Source: Syncephalis fuscata S228
Taxonomy: Eukaryota; Fungi; Zoopagomycota
NCBI GenBank assembly: GCA_025786725.1
Contig: JAHLTZ010000003.1
Location: forward strand, 496,001 to 560,000
Length of the DNA: 64,000 nucleotides
Reading direction: 5' to 3'
The position numbers and the translations under genes were made by a program. Positions 16,482 through 61,177 of this stretch are shown here, one piece after another; position 1 is the stretch's first letter; every line of letters starts with the position of its first letter. The notes beneath the pieces are model-generated. The model saw nothing but the letters and a program-made list of their open reading frames with translations, did no database searches and was not told the origin of the DNA.

Positions 16482-17020
16482 GTTAAAACAGAGAGAAATA
16501 GAGGGAGAGGAGAGAAAAAAACAGAGAGAGAAAGCAACTAGCAAGAAAGAAGATGGTCAAAACGGATCTGTGATGTCAATTACCGCCTTTGGTCATGTGT
16601 ATCCTTATGACCATTTCTGTTTTCGTACAACCCGCCATCTATAAATGGCGGTTTTTGAAAACAAAGCAACCTCGTGACATTTGAATTTGAACGTTCTCAA
16701 CACTATTTATTATTATTAATATTAATAGATGGAACTATTGTACTTTGACTCTCATTTTTTATTCACTCATTTCACTTCCTTTTTTAATACTTTTAGACAT
16801 AAACATCTACTCATCACTATTCCATGTGCACTATTCCATGTATAATATTGTATCCAACATTAATTAATTCATGTTTAATTATTGATACAATAATGTAATT
16901 AATTAGTTGTTTTTATTATTGCTTTAATATATACACATGTACTGTCATTTATTTAGTCAAATTGGCTATAGGGGAAGTGACTGTCTAATAAACGACTTTT
17001 TTAATAATTATATTAATATT

Positions 17021-17200
17021 AATCTTACATCACAAATATGCCCAAAATATGATAGTAGAACATTAGAAAATAGAAGAGACTGTTTAGATGCAAGAATCCA
17101 TGCTGTACATAGATGCAACAACAATCAATGTGGAATGACATGGAATTGCAATTATATGACTTTTATTAGTATTCAATCAACATTTTTACACATGGCCAAC
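17021..17200 (-). repeat. Dispersed ~175-bp repeat, copy 1 (inverted relative to copies 2 and 3)
   Basis: Reverse complement aligns by eye with 51012-51183 and 58084-58262. Confidence 0.7.
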
Positions 17201-17256
17201 AACAATAATGATCAACCTCAAATGTTTTAAAAAAATCAAATAGTATGCTATATTTT

Positions 17257-18165
17257 TCATTTAAATCGATTTATTAATATAACTTTAAAATATTTGGTTG
17301 CGCATGGTGCCAGAAGCGTGCTGATATAAAAAATAATACGTACTGCTGTGCTTTTCATCTTGTCTTCAATAAAAGTTTTATAAAGATTAACGTAGTTGCT
17401 ATCTAATATTACTTCCTTGTTGCTGCTAAGTGGATATTTAAGTGCTATATCTAAAATACTCTGTGCTTCTTTGTTACTCTCGTTTATCCATCTTCAACAC
17501 AATCGGAAAGTTGTTTGTTTGGTGCCGACGCACATCCCCACTTAGCGAGTGCAGCTGATAGCTCATTTTTTTTAGGTCGGAGACAATTTTTTAGCAAATG
17601 TTTCGGGATCGTTATTCATAACCGTTTTTGGAAGAAAAGAATCCCACACGGCATGAAGATTGGTGCTGGTCTTGCCATACCAAAGAGCCAGCACACCGTT
17701 AGCTCCTCCTAAATAACTGGTAACATGCAGTGGCTGACTTGCATCACTTAGATAGTGCAATAAGAACTAATGCCATCTTTCCTCCTGCCTGTGGAGCGTT
17801 GCATGCTGAAGCAAGTGCGGCTCTAATTATGCCACTGGTAAGACATCTATTTCTAACGCAATGGGCTGGAGCGTATGGAGTGAGAGTTGGTGGTGTGTGT
17901 GGGATACTGACATAATGCTCAAATTGGGTACCTGCATATGCTGGTATATTTCGAATGGTATCTGCCCAATTAGCGGCTATTCCCCATTCGACGTTTGTAT
18001 TTTTAGCATTAAGCATATTTTGACCTCATTACGAACACCGTCTGATAATAAATCTTTCACCATGAATGCTATTGCGTCGTGTGCAACTGGGCCCCAGGCA
18101 TCAGCAAAGGATGTGGCGGCAACGCACATAGTGATGGCTAAAATAATACTTTTTGATAGCAACAT
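17257..18165 (-). pseudogene. Secreted S1/P1 nuclease, copy A (several frameshifts)
   Basis: Signal peptide then WGPVAH, ANWADTIR, HYVS, HYLSDASQPLH and NLHAVWD; at least 3-4 frame breaks. Confidence 0.75.
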
Positions 18166-39552: not shown

Positions 39553-40215
39553 ATGAGTATTTCTATTGCCGTCGTCTGTACCATTGTCGTGGCTCTTGTG
39601 GCCACTATGACCGTGGTGGACACTAAGCCAGTTCTAACTCGTCGTGGTATGTTGCAATTACAATAAATATGTAAATTAGTATACTTATTAACATTATGTT
39701 TACCTAATGCATCATTAGAACATAAGTTGTGATTATTGATCATTATTCCAACACTTATCGACACTATTATACACATGATGGCCATTATAACACATAACAG
39801 CTGCCAGTAAGTGGAATTGTATATTGTTTGGTTACATACTAATTATATTTCATATATTATGCATATCTAATAATGATACTAATAGTTGGTAAGTGATATT
39901 TTGTATCAAATAAATATAAACTAATTACATGCTATGCGCTGTGTGTGTTTAACAATCTAATATCAATAGTTGGTAAGTGGCATTTTATATTAAATAGCTA
40001 TATACTAATTAAATAATATACGTTGTGTATATTTAATAACTATATTAATAGCTGGTAAGTAGTATGCTATATTAACCAATTTTATATTTGTTACATGTCA
40101 TTCAATGTGTGCACTTGATAACTTGTATTAATAGAATGTAAGTGACATCGTATAGCATTAATTTATATGCTGCTTATATGGCACATTCTACATATATACT
40201 ATCGATACAGTTTAA
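39553..40215 (+). CDS. Microexon-encoded secreted prepropeptide, short paralogue
   Basis: Exon 1 (39553-39646) MSISIAVVCTIVVALVATMTVVDTKPVLTRR+g. Microexons: AAC 39719 (donor reads ATAAGT), CTGCCA 39801, TTG 39886, TTG 39970, CTG 40052, AAT 40135. Last exon TT-TAA at 40211-40215. Confidence 0.7.
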
Positions 40216-41124
40216 CCGGTATATTCAATAGATTAGCATTGGTGGTGTAAATGGAGGTGCTAGAGCAATATATTTAGGTATATCTTTGGCAAAATCAAGA
40301 CCATTCAATGACAATTGTCTACTTCACTTACATATCAAGTTACAGCCAATGCACTCATTTTATTCAACTATTAATCAATGGCATCATTATATTGTCAACA
40401 AGTCTGAGTTTAGTCAAGCCTTTTTATCTATGCAAACTTGTAGCAATAAATACATGAGTTTATCAGTATTATACTTGATTAATTTTTTACAGTTTTATCC
40501 ATGCTTTGTTTGCATTTGGCAATTAGCAATATTGTTTAAGTAAAAATAATAGTATTACAGTAATAAAATTACAATTTGATCAACAGAATACATGTCACTG
40601 GGTTACTGCTCATGCACAGGTGATATAGATTGTATATAATGTGATTAGACTAACGTGTCATTATTGGTTTATTATTTAATTTGGTTTTACGCATATTGAT
40701 GGGACAAGCATTATAGTATTAAATATGTTGTCGTTTATTTAAAATATTACACTTGTTACGTTTATGCTGTTGATTACAGCGATATTAGGGTAGAATAATT
40801 GATAAATGATATTCCGAATAGACTGAGTATGCGCACTACTCAATATTGGAGTCAGACACGAGCAAAAGTGGCATGAAACTATGAAGAACGATTAGACAAC
40901 AAAATGGAATGAACAAAGTGAAGGCGGCCAATCTTCGCTAATCAATGCGTTGCTATGTCTTAATATAATTATTTGCTGAAATTCGATTTAATGTAAGTTA
41001 CGCACTCAATTTGACATTTTTCAGCTATACATTTATATTAAAACATATCACTGTAAACTAGTGTTTTAAATATTTATAAACGCTACTGATTCACTTTTTT
41101 ATTAACTATTATTTGTAGGCTGGT

Positions 41125-47664: not shown

Positions 47665-50600
47665 ATGCAACCAATGATCGATTCCCGCCCGCTTTTACTA
47701 GCAATTATTGCAGGTGTAATTACAAATACATGGCAGACTATAGACGCTAAACGTCATCATCATCATCGCCAACAATATTATCCACAGAATTACAATCATA
47801 ATTATTATCAACAACAAAACTATCAACAAAATTATTACCGACATCAACAACAAAATCATTATCAGCAGCAGCAGACTAGCATCGATAGCCCACCAATTCG
47901 GACCCCACAACATGATTCAAGCTACAACAACCAAACTGTGAAACAGGAACCGTCCAAACCTGACAATTCATCGTTGGAACAGCAGCCTGTACCACAGAGT
48001 ACACGAGGCCTGGTGCCCACAGCGTATGTTGTTGAGTTAACTGCTCAGCCTGGGACTAATGAGGTAGTCGCACAGCAACAAGAGTTTTTTCGGCAAGCTG
48101 AAAAAGTCTTATCCCTGGTCCTCGCGCAACCTACAATCGGTTAATGAACGCTGTTGCCTTTAACATTCTAAAAGGTGGTGAATGGTATCTGCAGCGTCTG
48201 GCGACACTACCTATGGTAAAAGCAATTGAGCCACTGGAAAAAGGACTTAAGCACTCTAATATTTTAAATGCATCCGGCAACGAAGCAATACAGCTTCGCC
48301 GACGCCAGTCAGTGGATACCAATAAAGATTTTGAGGCTGGTCGAGGAGTTAAGATTGGTATTATCGACACAGGCATCGATTATCTTCATTCTGCTTTGGG
48401 GGGCTGCTTTGGCAAAGGCTGCAAGGTGACCTATGGCTACGATTTTGTTGGTGATAATTACAATGGTGCTAATATGCCGCATCCCGATGCTGATCCCATG
48501 GACAGTTGTAATGGCCATGGTACGCATGTGGCTGGCATTATTGCGGCCCAGTCATCCTATGTAATCGGTGTGGCACCTGCTGCTACACTTGGCGCATACC
48601 GTGTTTTTGGCTGTGAAGGCACAGTAACTACAGATGTGCTAATGAGCGCAATGGAACGTGCTTTTGTCGATGGCATGGACATTGTTAATATATCTATTGG
48701 CAGTCGACGTTATTTTGTCAATGTATTTGATGCTCGTATGGCACAGGCACTAGTCAATTTGGGCGTTGTCGTCGTGGCGTCGGCCGGTAACAGTGGCGAC
48801 CTTGATATGTTTTCCGTCACTAGTCCGGGAACTGCACCAGGCGTCATTTCCGTTGGTTCTATTAACCCAGAAAAAAGTAACGTGTTCTTTTTTACCGAAC
48901 TTCAAACAAAAGAGCAGTTTACATATATTACTGCCAAGGTTATGAGTATACCACCATCTACTACAAGCAATATAACGACTACTGGATTCGATAACGCAGA
49001 AGCATGTCGACCGTTATCGCAATCTTATAAACACAAGTTTTTATTGGTCGATCGTGGGCAATGTACATTTGAAATTAAGGCACAGCATGCTAGCAAAGCA
49101 GGTGCCATTGGTCTTATTATAGCAAATAACGGTGAATCGCTTCAAGAGCCAGATATTAGCACTGGTATAAAAATCCCCGTGTTGATGGTTTTGCAAAGCA
49201 CGGGGAAACGACTTAAAAGTCTACTAACAAAGCCAGGAAATAACCAAACGCTTAAAGTCAAATGGAACCTATCGCCAACCAATGAACATGTTGCACGCGA
49301 GTGGGGATGGTCATCGTTTTCATCCTATGGGCCATCCGCGTCTATGAAAGGTTTTAAGCCAGAAGTGGTTGCCTATGGCGTTAAAATATTTAGCACTTAT
49401 CCGACACAACTTGGTTCGTATGCCATTCGAACGGGAACCAGTATGTCGGCACCTTACGTAGCAGGTACAGCAGCATTAATTTTACAACGTTCAGTAGCTG
49501 GCGTTCCGTTCAAACAGCGACCAACAGCCGTTCGTCGTATCTTGACCCAAACAGCAGATCCACAAGTATGGCAACAACATTTAACCTCCAATGAATTATC
49601 AGATCGTGTCTTGCCGCCATTACATTGTGGCTCGGGTCTAGCAAGAGCTGATGCTACGTCAGAGGCTACATGGGGATTTGATGTTGAAGGCATTACAATT
49701 TATCCCGATCAATACAATCGACCGACCATGTTCAATGCCACCAATGTCGCCTTTACCGGACATGTTCCTCAAGGAACAATAAAATTTCGACTTGAACTGG
49801 CGCCCTCTATTTCAAACTGGGTCATGGGCCATCCTCAGAATGGACTGGCCACCAGCACAATCAATATCTGGGACATGTATTCAATCACTCCAAGCACATT
49901 AAATATTGGGCCAGGTACATCTAATATAAGCGTAAATACGCCAACAAAGTATATATTTAATTTAATACTTGGGTCACAATCGATTAGTCCAAACATTGAC
50001 ACACTTTGGATTCACTCTGGTTTTATTGTAGCGGAGCACATTGCAGCATCCAATGGTAGAAAGACTGTACGAAGAATTCCGTTTCAATCAATTCTCGGTG
50101 CAAAATACAACATTAATCCTATACAAAAAACAAATAACTATCCAAAACTTGATAAATTCAATGGAGCAGCTCTTTTGCCAGAGACAGCACCTGCCATCAT
50201 CAACGGTAAACCGTTAAGTGTGGCGCTACGTTTCCGTCTTCTAACTCCTACTCAACAATTGTTTGCTCTTGTGGAGGATGCGGCAAGCAATCGCACACTT
50301 GGCATGGTACCTGGCTCAAAATCATTCAATGTGGATGCACAAGACAATATTAAGGACTCAGATTTCCTACTAACGTGGAACGGTGCAATTCAGATTTCCA
50401 ATCCATCGAATCCAAAACAAAGTAAGATAGCACCTGTACCCGATGGAAAATACCGTGTACGTCTATTTGTGCTTCGTCCAGGTCTTAATGCCACTAATCA
50501 ATTAAATTACGACACATGGCTAACACCGATTATTACCGTTTCAGGTATTGTCGCTAAAGCACAGACTCAAAATACCGCTGCTATAGTTAATGAAAATGCT

Positions 50601-50669
50601 GGTACTATTAACTCAGTAGTGCCTAAAATCCAAACTATGAGCGTATTTCTGCACAATAATTTGAATTAA
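47665..50669 (+). CDS. Secreted subtilisin (S8) with PA domain; frameshift near 48110-48140 between prepro and catalytic regions
   Basis: IIDTGIDY, GHGTHVAG, SAGNSG, GTSMSAPYVAG; PA domain RGQCTFEIKA; signal peptide and Gln/Tyr-rich N-terminus. Confidence 0.92.
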
Positions 50670-51011
50670 AACAGCCATTATATTACTAGTCTGCAGTTAA
50701 CTTTTAATAAACAAATATATTATTTATTTACATAGTTATAGCAGGGGTAGTGACTTAAACTGGGAGCAGCAAATCATTTTACACAATCAATTGTAGTAAT
50801 TTAAATAATCGACAAGTTGATTGGATTAATTTGTGTTTAAATGATCATTTACAATAAATATTAACGTAATATAATATCATTATCATTTTCATAAAATAGA
50901 ATATAATTAATGTAATAGAACATTGTATCAGTAATAATATTAAACATTTAAATAAATAATGTAACATACTATTTGATTTCATTGAAACATTTGAGACATA
51001 TCATTATTGAT

Positions 51012-51183
51012 GTTGGCCATGCGTAGAAATATTGATTAAATATCAATAAAAGCGATTGATCGTGATTCCATATCGTTTCGCATTGATTGTTGTTGCATCT
51101 ATATACAGCGTGGATTATTGCACCTGAATGGTCTCTATTTTTCAATTTTTACTGTTGATTTTGGGCATATTGCAATGTAAGAT
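51012..51183 (+). repeat. Dispersed ~175-bp repeat, copy 2
   Basis: gttggccatgcgtagaaatattgattaaatatc...gtggattattgcacctgaatg...gcatattgcaatgtaagat. Confidence 0.7.
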
Positions 51184-52660
51184 ACTCGTTTATGTGACAA
51201 AAAGGTAGGACGACTAGCATTTCTGATGTTCACCATTGTCTTGAGCATTCTTGGTATCAACTTCGTAGGTGCTGATGCTTTGCCGACCATTGATCAAGCA
51301 AATGGCCTCCACCATATGCAATAATGCTAAATTGAGTGTCTTCACCAGGAAAATCTTGTAGCACAATTGTAACTAGAATATACGACATGCCGTTGAGGTT
51401 ACTTGAACAGGTGTTGATGTAAAAAAGAGAAATAAAGACTAGTAATTAAATAATGTTTTTATTGATGTTCAAATATACATGCTATTTATATTGTTATATT
51501 TGGTATTATCACGTAATATATTACTGAAGAGAACGATAAGATAAAAATAAGAAAAAGAAAGTGAAATGAGTAAATGAAAATGTGAAAGTCAAAGTAAAAA
51601 TATTTAATTATGCAAATATTACATACTCAATCCGATGGTTTATTTCATATATAGCTATACAATTTTATTAATGGTCAATAAATAAAAATAATCTACCTTT
51701 CTATCATTGCAATTATGTATACTATTAGCTGCTTACTTTGATAACTAGTTAGATTAAGCTTTATAATAGTTGATTTGGTTGGTGGTCGTATAAATGTAGA
51801 TATATAAAAAGTTACAATGTGATTGTAAATATTTATCCGTACAAACAACCAAAATTATAAATTATAGTGACAATAATAAGTTATTTAATTACTAAAACTT
51901 ATTGCTTTAATTCTATCTACAGCTCTCTGTTTTCCGTGCGTTATTTTGGTTTAATATGCTGCTGTTCTAATTGCATCAGCAACGGTCAACTTTTTGATAA
52001 ATATAGTCCAGCTTAGCATGGCTATAATAATTTGCTATAGGTTAAACGAGTAAGCCTTTAAGCTGATAATTGTTTTTCCATTGGCTTCTGTCTTGGCCTA
52101 TTCTTCTATATTTCATCTTGCTTGACTTGTCAGAAGTGGTTTCAGAAATGTGGAGAGAACTTAGGCCTTGGATGGTTACCAATTGATATGCAATCCACGG
52201 TCACTATGCACTCGAAATTGTCGATATTTGAGCAAAAATTTTTATTGTATCTAGTTCAGTGTCCGCATATTGTAATGTGTATAATTTAGCCAATGAAATT
52301 TAGTCTACAGCTGAAAAACTGATAAAAATAACTTGTTAAAATATCTCATTGCTTAAAATGTTGTGGTGAATCATACCATAAACAGTACTTATTGTATAAT
52401 TGATTTCAGGTAATTTGGATTAGCCGTCATTTGAATGATATCAGTTGCACATGTGGCATGATATGCCTGGATGTGCTGCATTGTGAATTCAAAGCAATGA
52501 TTACCCGATAACAATGGGCATAGTGTCGAATGAAATACATACATGTACCAATCAGCACACTTTATAATTAAGGAGTTATGAGTGGCTTATGTATGGGAGT
52601 AAAAACCTGTATAAAATACCATTCTGATACATTAAACTTGTTTTTGCGTCAGTGTTGTAC

Positions 52661-53135
52661 GCTATTTGTATGTATGCAGATATTGGGACCCGAGTCATTC
52701 AGTGGAAGTGACAGCAAAAACAGCATTATCGCTTTTATAAAACCAAACAATATACTTGTTTTCACCAAGTAGTTAGACCTTGTAATAAAAAATACGACTA
52801 ATGTGTCTATCTCTATCATATGTGTACTGAATTATTATCATTATTGTGTTATTACTGTAAATGACTAGCAGATTGAAGTAAAGGCCGGGCAGATTATGTG
52901 CTATTTTGTATGCATGCAGATATCGGGGCCCAAGTCATTCGGTGGAAGTGACAGCAAAGGCATCATTATCGTTTTTACAAAACCAAACAATATACTTGTT
53001 TTTATTAAATAGTTAGATCGTGTAACAGAAAATACAGAATAATATACCTATCTCTATCGCATATGCACCGGATTATTACCATTATTGTTTCATTCCTGTA
53101 AATGATGGCAGCTTAAAGTAAAGACCAGGCAGGTT
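52661..53135. repeat. Two-copy tandem duplication, ~240-bp unit, upstream of the microexon gene
   Basis: gctatttgtatgtatgcagatattgggacccgagtcattcagtggaagtgacagc... at 52661 recurs with substitutions at ~52900. Confidence 0.85.
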
Positions 53136-53432
53136 AAAATTAAGACTGGGAACATTCTATCATACCACGAATCTATTGGTACCCGCACGTTTCAAACCAT
53201 TATTTAGATTGCTTCATTGGTTCATATTACACATCAATGGTATGCCTCGTATGCTACAGCATACCAGTACCTCAGCATAACCATAGATTTAAATAGCCCA
53301 CAAAATATACACAACCAACTAAAATATCATCACCACACTCTACTTCTTACTAAACACACACTACTCTTCACTTTACACTTACCACACTCTACTATCTCTT
53401 TTATTTGTTTGTCTTAACAAATCAATATCACC

Positions 53433-56400
53433 ATGAAGCTTTCCATTGCCGTCGTTTGCACCATTGCCATTGCGCTTGTGGCCGTCACAACCATGGTGGA
53501 TGCTAATCCAGCGTTAGTTCGTCGTGGTGGTATGTTGCAATAACAATAAATATGCCATATCATTATATTTACTAACAGTATTGCTAACTAATGATTATAA
53601 TAGCCAGTAGGTTGTATTATATACTACTTGACTATAAATTAACTATATTATTGATTAATTGTACCGTTTATTTAATATTAATAGAGGGTAAGTTGTACTA
53701 TATATTGCTTAACTATACATTAACTATGTGCCATATACTGTATTTATCAACAACTTAATATTAATAGAATGTAAGTTGTATTGTATATCAATTGATTACT
53801 TAATAATTATATACTTTGTACTGTGTGCATCAATGTTTAATACTAATAGGCAGTAAGTGATATTGTATACTAGTGACCTATAAATTAATTCTATACCATG
53901 TATTATTTGTATCAACAACTTAATGTCATAGAGGGTAAGGTGTATTGTGTATTAACTGGCTATGAACTAATTTTATATTATCCCCGTGTATATCAACAAT
54001 TTAATATTAATAGAATGTAAGTTATATTGCATATTAATTAATTATTCACTAATCATATATTATGTACTGTGTGTACCAACGGCTTAATAATAATAGGCGG
54101 TAAGCAGCATTATCTGTTGCTGACTTATAAATTAATTATATACCATACACTATGTGTATCAATAACTTGATGGAATAGTTAGTAAGTAACATTACATATT
54201 AACTGACTATGCACTAATTATACATAATGTACTATGTGTATCAACAATTTAATTCAATAGAAAGTAAGCTATATTATATATTAACTAATTACTCACTAAT
54301 TATATCTATGCACTGTATGCATCAACAAATATTAATAGACTGTAAGTAGCATTGTATATTGGTGATTTATACATTGATTATATACCACTTATTGTGTATA
54401 TCAATAACGTAATATTAATAGGCTGTAAGTACCATTATATATTGATGGTTTATAAATTAATTATGTGCCATGCACTGTGTATCAACGAATTAATATATTA
54501 GTGAGTAAGTAACATTGCATATTAACTGACTATACATTAATAATGCTATTTACTAATTGTACCGATTATTTAATATTAATAGATGGTAAGTATTATTGTA
54601 TATTAATTAACTATACATTAACTATACTATTTACTGATTGTACCAATTATTTAATATTAATAGCCAGTAAGTGATATTGTATATTAACTGAATATACATT
54701 AATCATGTTACTTACTGATTGTACTAATTATTTAATATTAATAGATTGTAAGTGATATTGTATATTAAATGAATATACATTAATCATGTTACTTACTAAT
54801 GGTATTAATTATTTAATATTAATAGCCAGTAAGTGATATTGTATATTAACTGACTATACATTAACCATGTCACTTACTGATTGTACCAATTATTTAATAT
54901 TAATAGCTGGTATGTTATATTGTATATTAACTGAATATACATTAATCATGCTATTTACTAATTATACCGATTACTTAATATTAATAGATTGTAAGTGATA
55001 TTTTATATTAGCTGACTATACATTAATTATAATATTTACTGATTGTACCAATTATTTAATATTAATAGCTAGTAAGTGATATTGTATATTAACTGAATAT
55101 ACATTAATCATGTTACTTACTGATTGTACTAATTATTTAATATTAATAGAACGTAAGTGATATTGTATATTAAATGAATATACATTAGTCATTCTATTTA
55201 CTAATTGTACCGATTATTTAATATTAATAGCCAGTAAGTGATATTTTATATTAACTGACTATACATTAACCATGTCACTTACTGATTGTACCAATTATTT
55301 AATATTAATAGCTGGTATGTTATATCGCATATTAACTGACTACATTAATAATGCTATTTACTAATTGTACCAATTATTTAATATTAATAGCTGGTATGTT
55401 ATATTGTATATTAACTGACTATACATTAATCATGCTATTTACTAATTGTACCGATTATTTAATATTAATAGATTGTAAGTGATATTTTATATTAGCTGAC
55501 TATACACTAATAATGCTATTTACTAATTGTACCGATTACTTAATATTAATAGATTGTAAGTGATATTGTATATTAACTGACTATACACTAATAATGCTAT
55601 TTACTAATTGTACCGATTGTTTAATATGAATAGGCTGTAAGTGATATTGCATATTAACTGACTATACATTCACTATGCTATTTACTGATTGTATCAATTG
55701 TTTAATATGAATAGGGGGTAGGTAATATTGCATATTAACCGAATATACATTAACCATGCTATTTACTGATTGTATCAATTGTTTAATATTAATAGATAGT
55801 AAGTGATATTGTATATTAATTGGCTATAAATTAATTATGCTATTTGCTGATGATACCGATTATTTAATGTTAATAGAATGTATGTGAAATTTTGGATCAA
55901 TTGAATATTCACTAATCACATGCTATTTATTGTATCCATTAACAAATTAATATTAATAGGCAGTAAGTAGAATTATATATTAACTAAATATGCACTAATT
56001 CTATACCATGTATTGTATATATAAATAACTTAATATAAAAGGACGTAAGTTGTATTATGTGTCAATTAACTACTTGCTAATTATATATTATGTATTATGC
56101 TTATCAATGGCTTAATATTAATAGAATGTAAGTCATATTGTATATTAATTGAACATTGGCTAATTATATACCATGCACCATGTATATTAATAACTTAATA
56201 TTAGCTAAATGTAATTTGTATTGTATATTAATTGAGCATTGGTTAATTATATATCACATATTGTGTACATTAATAATTTAATATTAATAGGCTGTAAGTA
56301 GTATTGTATATTGACGGCTTATACATTAATTATATACCGCTTATTGTGTATATCAACAACTTAATATTAATAGACTGTAAGTAGCATTGTATATTGCTGC

Positions 56401-56452
56401 CTTATAAATTAATTTATGACATATAACATCTTTATTTGTAAATACAGCATAA
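53433..56452 (+). CDS. Secreted 6-Cys prepropeptide encoded by 35 microexons (36 introns)
   Basis: Exon 1 is 53433-53529, then 34 three-nt exons and one six-nt exon, each between AG and GT(A/G) at ~81-nt spacing; last exon CA-TAA at 56448-56452. Spliced: MKLSIAVVCTIAIALVAVTTMVDANPALVRRGAKECKECVKNCLNANSTDSKPTADYCWDKCRQSKCYS*. Confidence 0.88.
53530..56447 (+). repeat. Tandem array of ~78-83-bp intron+microexon units
   Basis: Consensus gtaagtgatattgtatattaactgactatacattaatcatgctatttactaattgtaccgattatttaatattaatag+NNN. Units from 54502 to 55879 are almost all 81 bp. Confidence 0.95.
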
Positions 56453-58083
56453 TCGATGGTTTCAAGACATCAGCATTGGTAGTGCAATCAAGCCACTAGT
56501 CCAATACACTTTAGGTATATATTCGGTGAAAAGCAAGACCATTTGACAACTACGCCGTCCAGTCTATCTGTATATCAAGTTTTTGCCAATGCTTCGGTTT
56601 ATCCAATCTTTAACCAATGGAATCATTATGTTACCAACATGTTTGCATCTAGTTGTTTCTATTCAACTGTGCAAGCTTATAGTAATAAATCTATGGTTTC
56701 ATCTTAGCTATATACAATCAACTTACTATATTTTTAATCATGTTTTATTTACATTTAATAATTAACAATTATTAATCAAATAGTTAAATTAATAACAAAC
56801 TGTGTATGATTATATCGTGTAAGCTATAGACATAGATTGTTATGGATGGTAGTAAAGCTATCATTATCATATAGCCAAATAATAGTATGCTGAATTAAAA
56901 TAAATACGCTTTTTAATAAAACACGACAATAAAGCATACAGTATTATAAAACAAAATAAATAGACAAAACAAATACGTGAATAGTAATAACAAAACTATA
57001 CTGTATGCAATTAGCCAATAGTAATGAACGAAATGGATCAAGATCTGCTAAAAGAATACAGTTAGCAATAAACTTTTAGCTTTTATTAATATAATTTCTA
57101 CAATTTACAATATTAATGATATAGACAGACATATAGTATATGTATACAGGGTAGATATGTACAGCACAATAATAATGATAAATAAATAGTTTAATAACCA
57201 ATGACACTCATCACTCAGTTTCATCTTTAATAAAGCGGATACTTCGTTTAAATGTGTGGCTATTATAGTTATTTAACTGCCAAATCACATTAAACAGTCA
57301 ATAGTGTGTTCAATATTGTGGAAAAAGTTATCTTTATTTAGTTGATAAAAATATCATAAGATTCAATACAAATCAAATGGTTTAAATGATTCGCTACAGC
57401 TCCCTTTTAAGCTTTTTTGCCATATTCCATAACTTTTCTAAATTATGACATTGGAGCGACTACTGCGATGTTTAAGAATGAATGTTACAAGTAGATTGTT
57501 CTAGTTTGCCAATGATAAATGTCATGTTGACGGTTTTATTTTGCATATCTCCCCTCTTGCTTGATACACCAACTAATTAACTTGATTTAATCAAAACAGT
57601 AATGCTTTCATGTAATTCGGAATTGTTTAATTACTAAATCTGATACCTGAAATGCTCTAAATAAGCCACTCTAATTTTATTTGTTGGTTAAATTTTATAT
57701 TTTAAAAAATATTTATTAATTGAATCGCTTTTGTTTGCATTAAACTTTATTTATTTTGCTAGTTGTTTCGTTAGTAGTTTGTATTTGTTCAATAAAAACG
57801 TTTATTTCAATATTAACTACTGTTTTAATACAATTAATGCTAATCTTTACATAGCATGTTTTTGTATTGTATTTTTGAGTTGCATTTGTCACAAATATAT
57901 TGTTGAAAGTCTTTTAACAAATAAAACATGATTAGCATTGCTGTTGATATTGCTAAAATTAACTAAACTATGTAAATAAGCAAAATTGGTTTCAATTGAA
58001 AACATGCTGTTATGTAAAAAAAAACATAGTTATAGTGTTCTCATTTGATTAATTTGAAATTCACGAGGCTAATTATTGTTTTT

Positions 58084-58262
58084 GTTGGTCATGTATAGAA
58101 AAATTGATCAAATATCGATAGAAGCTATATGATTGTAATTCCATATCATTTCGCATTTGTTGTTGCTATGTCTACGTACAGTGTGGATTATTGCATCTGA
58201 ATGATTTTTTCTATTTTCTAATATTCTACTATTGTATTTTAAGCATATTTGTGCTGTAAGAT
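58084..58262 (+). repeat. Dispersed ~175-bp repeat, copy 3
   Basis: gttggtcatgtatagaaaaattgatcaaatatc...gtggattattgcatctgaatg...gcatatttgtgctgtaagat. Confidence 0.7.
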
Positions 58263-58589: not shown

Positions 58590-58955
58590 GATGATAAAAT
58601 TCCACTTATTACTTTTGGAGCTACTTGATTTGCTACTTTTATGAAAGATAAGGTTGCTGGACTATCCAATCGTTGCAAAAAGGTGCTCAAACTGCTGAGT
58701 AACAAGGACTTTTGGTTATTGTAGATATTAACGAGTACAATACATCAAAAGTCTGTTCCAAATGCAAGAAAAAGGAAATGACAGGTTTACATCTGGAAGA
58801 ACGCAAAAGCACAATGCATAGCGTATTTGTTTGGCAAAACAATGATTGTCGTACGGTATAGCAGCGTGATGTTAATGCCAGCAGAAACATGCACAGTATA
58901 TTCAGTACAATGGCCAGTGGTGAACCAAGGCCTTCTGATTTCTTACCACCTATTA
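58590..58955 (+). pseudogene. Fanzor/TnpB-like nuclease C-terminal remnant
   Basis: PLITFGAT*FATFMKDKVAGLSNRCKKVLK/AE*QGLLVIVDINEYNTSKVCSKC...HSVFVWQNNDCRTV*QRDVNASRNM...GEPRPSDF. This shows the RuvC-II Glu, zinc-ribbon cysteines and RuvC-III RDxNA; three stops and one frameshift. Confidence 0.75.
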
Positions 58956-59677: not shown

Positions 59678-61177
59678 ATGGCTCACGTTTACTATCCCGT
59701 CTCGCCCAGCGCCTCGGATTTGGATGACGCACAGGCTATCAATCCTATAGCTGTTGACGCTGAATTGTTTTTTGACGATAATAGCAGCGACAGTTGCACA
59801 ACAGTCCCGCAGTATAACGGTCGTATTCTTCGTAAACTGCTTTCTAGCGACCTGCCCATGTTTGCGCCCAGCTCTTCTGGCAGCCTTGCCAGCTCTCCGT
59901 CCATTGATGCATTGAAGATTAAGCCTATTAACGTTGCGCTTCCTATGTTTGCAGCGATCAGCCCGGTCAGCGATCTGGCCGACATGAGCGACGAAGGGAG
60001 CACAGGTGGTGCCTGTGAAGATAGTCAGTCGGACGATGCAGCAAGCACCGCCGACTACTCTTCGTATTCTCGCCAAAAGCCTGGCCGTAAGCGCAAAGGA
60101 GAGGAGCGGAAACCGGAAGACCAAGCGCGTATCCGTATGTTGCGCAACCGAGCTGCGGCACAAGCATCGCGTGAACGTAAACGACAACATGCTGCAGAAA
60201 TGGAGGAAACAAACAAACGATTACGCATCGATAACGATGAATTGAAGGAGCGGGCCGAAGCAGCTGAGAAAGCACAAATGCTACTTAGCAATCAAGTAGA
60301 GCTGCTGTCTAAACAAGTAAACGATCTTTTAATGATGTTTACACCGTCCAATTCTTCCATTTCTAATGAGCAAACTTTACCTTATGACAATCTATCTCTT
60401 GTTTCTAATGAATCTAATGACAAACTGACAGCCATTCAACCTAGTGTCGATTTATTATCCGACAACAATTCCTCTTCTCTTCTTTCCGTCTTCAACCATC
60501 TTCTTTCGAATCCCCCCACAAATGATGTAATGGCATCGGTAGACGGTCTTGGCGGATCAGAAGTATCCCCAATGTTAGTGCAGGACACTAGCATCTCCCG
60601 GCAGCGGAGACCGTTCTGCTCGATGATCCACTACAGTCCATTTGTATTCCATCGCTATCCGAATCACTTCACACAGACGAGACGGTGTCCGGCCACGGTC
60701 ACACCGAACAACAGCTATTTGAACTATTATTTGGCGAGAATACCGAGTCTTCTAATGACACCACTGTTTCTTTCTAACGTTGCATCATTGTCATCCGCTC
60801 TAACCACCTCAGCAGTGTCTGTAGCGTCGATGTGGGTGCAATGGGTTAGAACAGTTTGTACATTAGTGCTACGGCTATGTTTGTCATTTGGGTTCTATAG
60901 TGATACGATACGTCGTGTTTGGCCATCAATGTTACCGTTGAACGGCTCCTTTACACGAAATAATCGATGTCATTACAGTTGTTCCAAATATACTTTACCG
61001 TTAAGGTCAGGTAGATTTGGTTGTTTATTCTCCAGTGAAGTGATCTTGCCACTTACAGTACCTCGTTTATCAGCGAATGGTCATTTTGTTGATTTAGCGG
61101 CTGTTTGTGCAAAAGATATGCATTATGCAAACGAACCTGCTCCATTGATGCCGGGTAAACAACGTCTATCTGTTTAA
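59678..61177 (+). CDS. HAC1: bZIP UPR transcription factor HAC1/XBP1 (unspliced ORF 499 aa; predicted spliced form ends at 60777, 352 aa)
   Basis: RMLRNRAAAQASRERKR basic region plus leucine zipper; twin IRE1-type hairpins at 60554-60568 and 60594-60610. Confidence 0.85.
   Translation: MAHVYYPVSPSASDLDDAQAINPIAVDAELFFDDNSSDSCTTVPQYNGRILRKLLSSDLPMFAPSSSGSLASSPSIDALKIKPINVALPMFAAISPVSDLADMSDEGSTGGACEDSQSDDAASTADYSSYSRQKPGRKRKGEERKPEDQARIRMLRNRAAAQASRERKRQHAAEMEETNKRLRIDNDELKERAEAAEKAQMLLSNQVELLSKQVNDLLMMFTPSNSSISNEQTLPYDNLSLVSNESNDKLTAIQPSVDLLSDNNSSSLLSVFNHLLSNPPTNDVMASVDGLGGSEVSPMLVQDTSISRQRRPFCSMIHYSPFVFHRYPNHFTQTRRCPATVTPNNSYLNYYLARIPSLLMTPLFLSNVASLSSALTTSAVSVASMWVQWVRTVCTLVLRLCLSFGFYSDTIRRVWPSMLPLNGSFTRNNRCHYSCSKYTLPLRSGRFGCLFSSEVILPLTVPRLSANGHFVDLAAVCAKDMHYANEPAPLMPGKQRLSV
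60549..60615 (+). promoter_or_regulatory. IRE1-type unconventional intron (41 nt, 60561-60601)
   Basis: GGAT-[CAG|AAGT]-ATCC and TCTCC-[CGG|CAGC]-GGAGA: two 7-nt CNGNNGN loops. Confidence 0.8.

Follow-up and report, generated by a model that had tools for sequence, protein, structure and literature searches.

Results

Structure of the gene

The window analysed here is a 64,000-nt stretch of the Syncephalis fuscata S228 genome (GenBank assembly GCA_025786725.1, contig JAHLTZ010000003.1, positions 496,001 to 560,000 of the forward strand), and it carries a gene in which nearly the whole mature part of a small, predicted secreted peptide is encoded by consecutive exons of one codon's length. A frame-blind caller of donor and acceptor sites found 35 microexons in this gene, 34 of them 3 nt long and the other 6 nt, with starts from 53604 to 56374. 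Its parts, in window positions, are the following.

53433..53529 (+): coding part of exon 1, 97 nt, phase 1, with a hydrophobic signal-like leader and a short pro-piece ending in dibasic RR
53530..56447 (+): 36 introns of 71-80 nt and the 35 microexons between them, together an 81-bp tandem repeat
53604..54099 (+): microexons 1-7, predicted first helix with Cys 1-2; junctions joined in RNA (joint 53606>54097 and loose end at 53529)
54583..55152 (+): microexons 13-20, variable loop, from unit comparison with a near-identical copy of the gene on contig C64 (L002/L050), and RNA joint 54504>55150
55231..55879 (+): microexons 21-29, with eight junctions joined in RNA (joint 55233>55877)
56205..56210 (+): the sole 6-nt exon, its acceptor moved 3 nt upstream, from the exon calls
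56448..56700, end approximate (+): last exon, with 2 coding bases, the stop at 56450-56452 and a conserved 3' untranslated region (UTR); RNA depth drops in the 56622-56768 bin

The original prediction, made from the sequence alone, had listed 35 exon starts, a 97-nt phase-1 first exon and a last exon at 56448, and the caller matched all of these exactly. Its counts were also reproduced by eye: 14 exons end in T, 9 start with AA, AG or GA, and the 6 that start with GC all follow a T. The complete introns that it had claimed for each unit were found in 36 of 36 cases (GT...AG, 71-80 nt), the acceptors being TAG in 34 introns, AAG in one and CAG in one. Its branch-site claim stood in part, as only 20 of the 36 introns have a candidate CTRAY motif no more than 45 nt from the 3' splice site; a TTAAT is present at about -13 in most of the 36 introns, and AGs are few in their last 40 nt. 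Scored as a repeat, the microexon region gives ~33 copies of an 81-bp unit.

Each microexon completes one codon with its first two bases and opens another with its final base. The joined frame encodes 69 amino acids in a coding sequence of ~210 nt, remains open up to the stop at 56450 and contains six Cys with the spacing 2-3-14-3-4. When the exon order of the gene was shuffled, frames with 0 stops made up 0.6% of cases, frames with at least six Cys 0.14%, and frames with both properties 5e-5. The 94/97-nt exon 1 is conserved across 30 paralogs, and the cleavage sites of its leader (signal and RR) are predicted.

Joining of microexons in RNA contigs

The RNA data consist of one public run, in the form of contigs only and with its RNA nature guessed, which we aligned to positions 52800-57200. 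Consecutive 3-nt exons are spliced together in these contigs. The letters between the two sides of joint 53606>54097 are exons 2-6, in order and exact, those of joint 55233>55877 are exons 22-28, also in order and exact, and a loose contig end at 53529 runs on into microexons 1-3. Among the joints listed, 15 of the 36 predicted junctions are present in the contigs, or 17 if two in the C64 context are included. The mapping of RNA that had been proposed as a check therefore gave predicted junctions, and the claim of a spliced transcript holds at the level of the family and for the sequence common to the window and C64 copies. Depth reaches 3e5 over exon 1 and 1.7e5 over the 3' UTR and is mostly 10-200 over the array, figures that sum the whole family and are no measure of expression; the contrast in depth between exons and introns is 1e3-1e4.

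In the contigs for exons 2-6 and 22-28 the shorter side measures 80 and 33 letters, respectively, so that both include neighbouring intron sequence and derive from partly spliced molecules. Since these joined blocks are flanked by retained introns, intron removal does not proceed strictly 5' to 3'. Two further joints correspond, by eye, to runs of three and nine exons of the paralog L019. Exon skipping was seen in none of the five legible joined runs of the window gene and L019, among the joints listed.

The family and selection on its frame

The genome scan for AG-NNN-GT units suggested with the original prediction returned a large family: the exact unit TAATAG-NNN-GTAAGT occurs 2,752 times in the assembly versus 5 for the reversed control, and the leader motif that starts the gene 230 times versus 0, both counts being inflated by haplotype duplicates. 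We analysed 20 full and 30 partial loci and took the exon statistics from 41 distinct intron-bearing loci. Among the internal exons of the latter, 750 of 754 are multiples of 3 (704 of 3 nt, 44 of 6 nt and 2 of 9 nt), all in phase 1-1, and 4 of 754 are not, so that the 3-nt share is 93%, and the 6-nt form seen once in the window gene has 44 instances in the family. Complete genes have 18-35 microexons. Family introns measure 70-89 nt in 723 of 754 cases, with GTAAGT as donor in 640 of 754, a GC donor in 21 and a TAG acceptor in 734.

The codons formed at adjacent junctions include 3 stops in 705, versus 44.7 ± 4.9 after shuffling (a 15-fold depletion), and 132 Cys codons versus 58.7 after shuffling, whereas at junctions that leave out one exon stops number 45 in 667, which is the random level and thus unpurged. 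Because stops are depleted in adjacent but not in skip junctions, selection acts on the product that includes all exons; the phase-1 frame between adjacent exons is under selection. Two of the three remaining adjacent stops (L041 and L047) are probably missed weak donors and the third (L036) is probably a natural stop. Together with the exact joining in RNA, this adjacent-only depletion bears out the earlier opinion that the array is hard to explain as a neutral minisatellite. The size of the family, its intronless members and the lack of support for exon skipping go beyond what the original prediction had noted.

The products of complete genes have 51-69 amino acids and are mostly Cys-rich, with C-x2-C and C-x3-C, some being short and Trp/Pro-rich. 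L034, L036, L037, L038 and L042 encode other mature peptides (short, Trp/Pro-rich, with two Cys or none, or longer and intronless), and some of these five have an extended leader. L010 and L014 are one base short early in the leader, by lesion or sequencing error. The first donor of L033 is dead, yet its close copy L049 is intact.

Intronless paralogs

Four of the 20 full loci (L038, L042, L043 and L048) are intronless, and the family thus has intronless paralogs with the leader, UTR and flanks in common with the microexon genes. L043 and L048 encode a 65-amino acid, six-Cys peptide that reads into the same last exon as the microexon genes, and the GenBank models P0123 and P0126 (69 amino acids, six Cys) are unbroken in the genome; the Cys spacing in these four is 2-(3/4)-n-(3/5)-3. 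Other models, such as P0121 and P0122, with the family leader and unrelated, Cys-poor tails, look mis-built. In a tree of the upstream region plus leader, the intronless state needs three changes, of which well-supported branches force at least two. Within a microexon clade (support 100/98), L038 groups as the sister of the microexon gene L037, and the two have four consecutive triplets in common. The phase-1 triplets of L043 match the microexon alphabet better than all 5,000 synonymous recodings. As L038, L043 and L048 retain the upstream and downstream flanks, they are not simple poly(A) retrocopies. The simplest reading is the in-place loss of all introns via recombination with complementary DNA (cDNA), a direction that the sequences support well for L038 only.

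Copying of units, cassette and flanks

The window and C64 copies are identical in exon 1 and the first 13 microexons; beyond these, whole units set their loops apart, with seven units between exons 12 and 20 in the window copy and four in the C64 copy; their upstream regions are 99% identical. Units 14-18 of the window copy resemble a recent duplicate of units 19-24, and the flanks of units 14 and 19 are identical in 70 of 70 positions. In collinear units exons differ by 5.6% versus 1.6% for introns, a comparison biased by the identity filter and suggestive only. As the gain or loss of an intron plus 3 bases keeps the frame, recombination between homologous introns would edit the peptide residue by residue. 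We infer that the variety arises from copying of intron-plus-codon units at the DNA level and not from exon skipping, its adaptive value being a conjecture.

The family loci have at least 1.5 kb of common flank on each side at about 75-89%, which suggests that the gene spreads as a cassette; no convincing terminal inverted repeats were found around it. The remaining features of the window that belong to the family are these.

51850..53432 (+): upstream flank, common to the family at about 75-83% by locus comparison, its true 5' boundary lying further out
52661-53136: 240-bp tandem repeat within the upstream flank
56448..58262 (+): downstream flank, present at about 80-89% in the majority of full loci and running up to a dispersed repeat of 220 bp
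39553..40250 (+): short diverged paralog with a similar leader, five intact 3-6-nt units and no Cys

The paralog at 39553..40250 is probably degenerate, as the donor of one of its units is dead (AT in place of GT at 39722). The dispersed repeat, of 220-290 bp, lies at 50971-51183, 58043-58262 and 16949-17284 (-), the first two in direct orientation and flanking the microexon gene, and the common downstream flank of several members stops at such a repeat.

An element of ~410 bp is found in introns of 470-570 nt in L005, L017, L024/L045, L029, L031, L037, L039 (twice), L044 and L046, where the insertions leave the reading frame intact. It is antisense, sits ~20 nt past the donor in different introns of different paralogs, and its copies at distinct loci are 74-95% alike. 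Its T-rich tail, target duplications of 16-18 nt at four of the insertions and, by eye, a head like that of a transfer RNA (tRNA) suggest that it is probably a short interspersed nuclear element (SINE) targeting the intron repeat; ARAGORN (for tRNA) and Rfam did not recognise it. L009 and L015 have an intron of about 905 nt after the first microexon, 80% alike between them, carrying a different insertion. Other neighbours in the window are a subtilase with a PA domain at 48144-50669 (+), a bZIP protein at 59678-61177 (+) and a Fanzor/TnpB-like relic with stops at 58640-58950 (+), whose open piece at 58703-58858 matches PF07282 with E 1.6e-4, below the curated cut-off. A uricase gene lies 10 kb upstream of the microexon gene.

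Predicted product and its possible role

The predicted mature peptide of the window gene has 38 amino acids and a net charge of +2. AlphaFold models of two intronless mature peptides are helix-loop-helix hairpins with predicted local distance difference test (pLDDT) scores of 88 and 84; these models and the Cys spacing point to two antiparallel helices, each with a C-x3-C. The best structural matches are at background level (Z 3.4 to 6ofa, a wasabi receptor toxin, 2.5 to 2l37 and 2.3 to 7uv3), and searches of Pfam, PDB sequences, Foldseek and the ESM Atlas gave nothing significant. In a homolog search with the intronless members all convincing matches were S. fuscata proteins, besides which there was one hit of 1,581 amino acids at 28% identity, and the family leader was not found in metagenomes. 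A CS-alpha-beta defensin was considered and rejected, as neither model has strands and the window peptide lacks C-x-C.

S. fuscata belongs to the Zoopagales and is not known to cause disease in humans, animals or crop plants. Syncephalis species are obligate mycoparasites (PMC13188720). The constant dibasic leader, the hypervariable Cys-stapled mature part, the high copy number and this obligate parasitism argue for a variable effector or toxin directed against the fungal host, which is the most likely role, with about as much to be said for it as against it. An antimicrobial role appears unlikely, and a signalling or surface/structural role is to the same degree doubtful. The hosts of Syncephalis belong to the Mucorales.

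Similar arrays in other eukaryotes

When metagenomes were scanned for pairs of adjacent units, 42 stretches came up. Those with GGA-only arrays were rejected as bacterial repeats of the clustered regularly interspaced short palindromic (CRISPR) type, as read for L057. In ten AT-rich contigs, 153 of 154 exons have 3 nt, and 1 phase-1 stop was found versus 6.2 expected (P 0.002). Runs of 3-nt units that are open in phase 1 occur in the AT-rich fungal contigs L052, L054, L058, L068-L070, L073, L074, L076, L082 and L087. In L052, L073 and L082 the phase-1 array leads into a kinase-like exon with weak Atlas neighbours in Mucoromycota and no Pfam score; these genes are putative Glomeromycotina kinases. 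The kinase-like exon of L052 and L073 opens with three bases that a donor-like GT follows, a hint that units are born by duplication. L067/L060 come from a soil eukaryote of 45% GC that is probably a fungus, and in them a signal-like exon of 87 nt precedes one-codon exons in phase 0, a phase to which the shuffle test does not apply. One-codon arrays in phase 0, with periods of 70-73, thus occur in three other eukaryotes, at L067:6072-7190 (+), L060 (-), L091 and L075 (-). By sequence, these metagenome arrays look like the same architecture in unrelated eukaryotes.

Discussion

The data are best explained by a transcribed, spliced protein-coding gene that belongs to a large S. fuscata family, a reading that we hold with high confidence together with the following mechanism. 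Each 71-80-nt intron would be recognised singly, by intron definition, so that exon length would hardly matter and all microexons would normally be included. The unit of an intron plus 3 nt being frame-neutral, unequal crossing-over or conversion between homologous introns could add, delete or swap single residues, and this shuffling of units could produce a hypervariable mature peptide behind a constant leader. Loss of the introns of a whole array, probably via recombination with reverse-transcribed messenger RNA, would give the intronless members. The 69-amino acid product would be secreted and cut after RR by a Kex2-type protease, yielding a disulfide-stapled helix-loop-helix of 38 residues.

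Several points weigh against this explanation or limit it. Joint 54504>55150 contains four exons of the C64 copy and not the seven of the window copy, and as this is the joint that discriminates between them, expression of the exact window copy is putative. No full-length spliced contig of the window locus appears among the joints listed, the junction evidence comes from a single run that is RNA by guess, and contigs lose rare variants, so that rare skipping would be hidden. The joints that connect exon 1 with the last exon have unread letters inside and may come from intronless members, for which reason we did not count these joints as proof of splicing; the depth over exon 1 and the UTR likewise includes intronless members. 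Paralogs and haplotype pairs are not independent samples, and some copies look dead (the first donor in L033, and exons that are not multiples of 3 in L027, L029, L039 and L041). No convincing homolog outside S. fuscata was found with intronless members as queries, and the secretion, disulfides and activity of the product are predictions.

Among the other explanations, the one that survives best concerns the persistence of the architecture and not the reality of the gene, and can be true together with the reading above. It holds that the arrays are a tolerated by-product within real spliced genes, a selfish or drifting intron repeat in a mobile cassette that gains nothing from shuffling. Copies with kilobases of common flank are indeed scattered across many contigs, intact intronless members recur, so that the introns are dispensable, and similar arrays are found in kinase genes of other fungi. 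However, mature peptides differ greatly behind near-identical leaders, copies that are otherwise almost the same have loops that differ in whole units, and the higher divergence of exons than of introns in collinear units, filter-biased as it is, suggests the same. We regard this possibility as tentative, although it has to be taken seriously. It is rather improbable that the family is spliced while the window copy is silent or a weaker allele, with the RNA derived from the C64 copy: the sole discriminating joint among those listed has C64 exons, but the leader, splice sites and frame of the window copy are intact and its upstream region is nearly that of the C64 copy. The possibility that variety comes mainly from alternative skipping of microexons in each transcript, as in the schistosome micro-exon genes (MEGs), is less probable still. 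All exons are symmetric, so that the frame would be kept on skipping, schistosome MEGs do operate in this way (PMC4350168) and contigs would hide rare isoforms; nevertheless, no skip was found in the five legible runs of the window gene and L019, skip junctions carry stops at the random rate, and each Cys needs two particular adjacent exons, the loss of either of which destroys it. Finally, a neutral intronic minisatellite, in which the 3 kb are one long intron or an untranscribed repeat and the triplets are not exons, can practically be discarded, for although the region scores as an 81-bp tandem repeat, repeats hold their unit length by themselves and could explain the 3-nt spacing, and some RNA joints link exon 1 with the last exon, the inner letters of these long joints are unread and may derive from other family members, consecutive triplets are joined exactly in RNA, stops are depleted 15-fold between adjacent exons only, and the same kind of joined sequence is present in intronless paralogs.

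Returning to the spliced gene family, a wider interpretation may be proposed, although its case falls somewhat short of an even one. The family would represent a distinct diversity-generating architecture in which intron-plus-codon units act as recombination handles for single-residue change in more than 100 secreted toxin-like peptides, and in which intron loss driven by reverse transcription fixes variants. Arrays of one-codon exons would have arisen independently in other fungi (in Glomeromycotina-type kinase genes, and in the phase-0 gene for a secreted peptide of a soil fungus) as well as in one or more further eukaryotes, and annotation would have missed them.

With 36 introns in a coding sequence of 210 nt, and up to seven consecutive 3-nt exons joined without error in the contigs seen, the family provides a natural system in which to test intron definition, the order of splicing and the lower limit of exon size. 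It also represents a large repertoire of predicted secreted peptides in a mycoparasite, most of it overlooked by public gene models: the complete Cys-rich models that we checked are intronless members, and several others consist of the leader plus an unrelated tail. The architecture suggests a testable route to rapid protein evolution, with one residue per repeat unit, and the intronless paralogs provide a clean case of whole-gene intron loss. Furthermore, the look-alike arrays in unrelated metagenome fungi suggest that part of the sequence masked as minisatellite codes for protein.

Comparison with known systems

The introns agree with U2 spliceosomal introns in their GT/GC donors and YAG acceptors and in their exact removal in RNA contigs. 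Tandem genomic duplications and introners give rise to many sequence-similar introns per genome. The sister stwintrons of the Hypoxylaceae similarly are many sequence-similar introns in one genome (PMC9024468). Unlike such repeat-born introns, the S. fuscata copies follow one another head to tail within a single gene family, with three bases between them, and are neither nested nor scattered over unrelated genes. Isolated microexons of 1-15 nt in plants and animals are as tiny as those described here, and in plants their flanking introns are removed successively and often detained (PMC8831610), to which the partly spliced contigs of S. fuscata may be compared. Those microexons occur singly in conventional genes, whereas S. 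fuscata has 35 in a row that code for nearly the whole mature product.

In shape only, the modelled peptides resemble the plant alpha-hairpinins (Luffin P1, vicilin leader peptides) and the CS-alpha/alpha scorpion toxins (wasabi receptor toxin), which are also helix-loop-helix peptides with a C-x3-C on both helices. These have four Cys in nested disulfides, unlike the S. fuscata peptides, which have six with an extra C-x2-C, and neither Foldseek, Pfam nor PDB sequences gave a match for this link, the best Z being 3.4. Fungal small secreted Cys-rich effectors typically combine a constant leader with a variable Cys-rich mature part and are lineage-specific and dispersed in high copy. The S. fuscata family is like them in its conserved pre-pro leader, dibasic site, variable Cys-rich part and high copy number, and differs from them in its gene architecture, in having a fungus as host and in that no homologs were found outside S. 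fuscata.

We found no description of this family, or of arrays of consecutive one-codon exons, in the open-access literature. The closest known system, to which the original prediction had already likened the gene, is that of the Schistosoma MEGs, a parasite multigene family in which a signal-peptide exon is followed by many small symmetric exons, with secreted products that automatic annotation missed (PMC10526429, PMC4350168). This likeness stands for the layout, as most of the coding sequence of the S. fuscata family lies in very small symmetric exons, but not for the long introns or for homology. Schistosome MEG exons are mostly of 15 nt (range 6-81, or 3-81 by the abstract), with 10-20 per gene, introns of 0.1-5 kb and alternative splicing (PMC10526429, PMC4350168), whereas the S. 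fuscata introns are short homologous repeats, 93% of the exons have 3 nt, complete genes have 18-35 of them, the predicted product is Cys-stapled and exon skipping is without support. Nor was a sequence relationship to MEG proteins found, as the convincing matches of intronless members were all S. fuscata proteins. The S. fuscata family is thus best regarded as an extreme variant of microexon genes, real and supported by RNA at the family level, whose diversifying mechanism is probably a different one.
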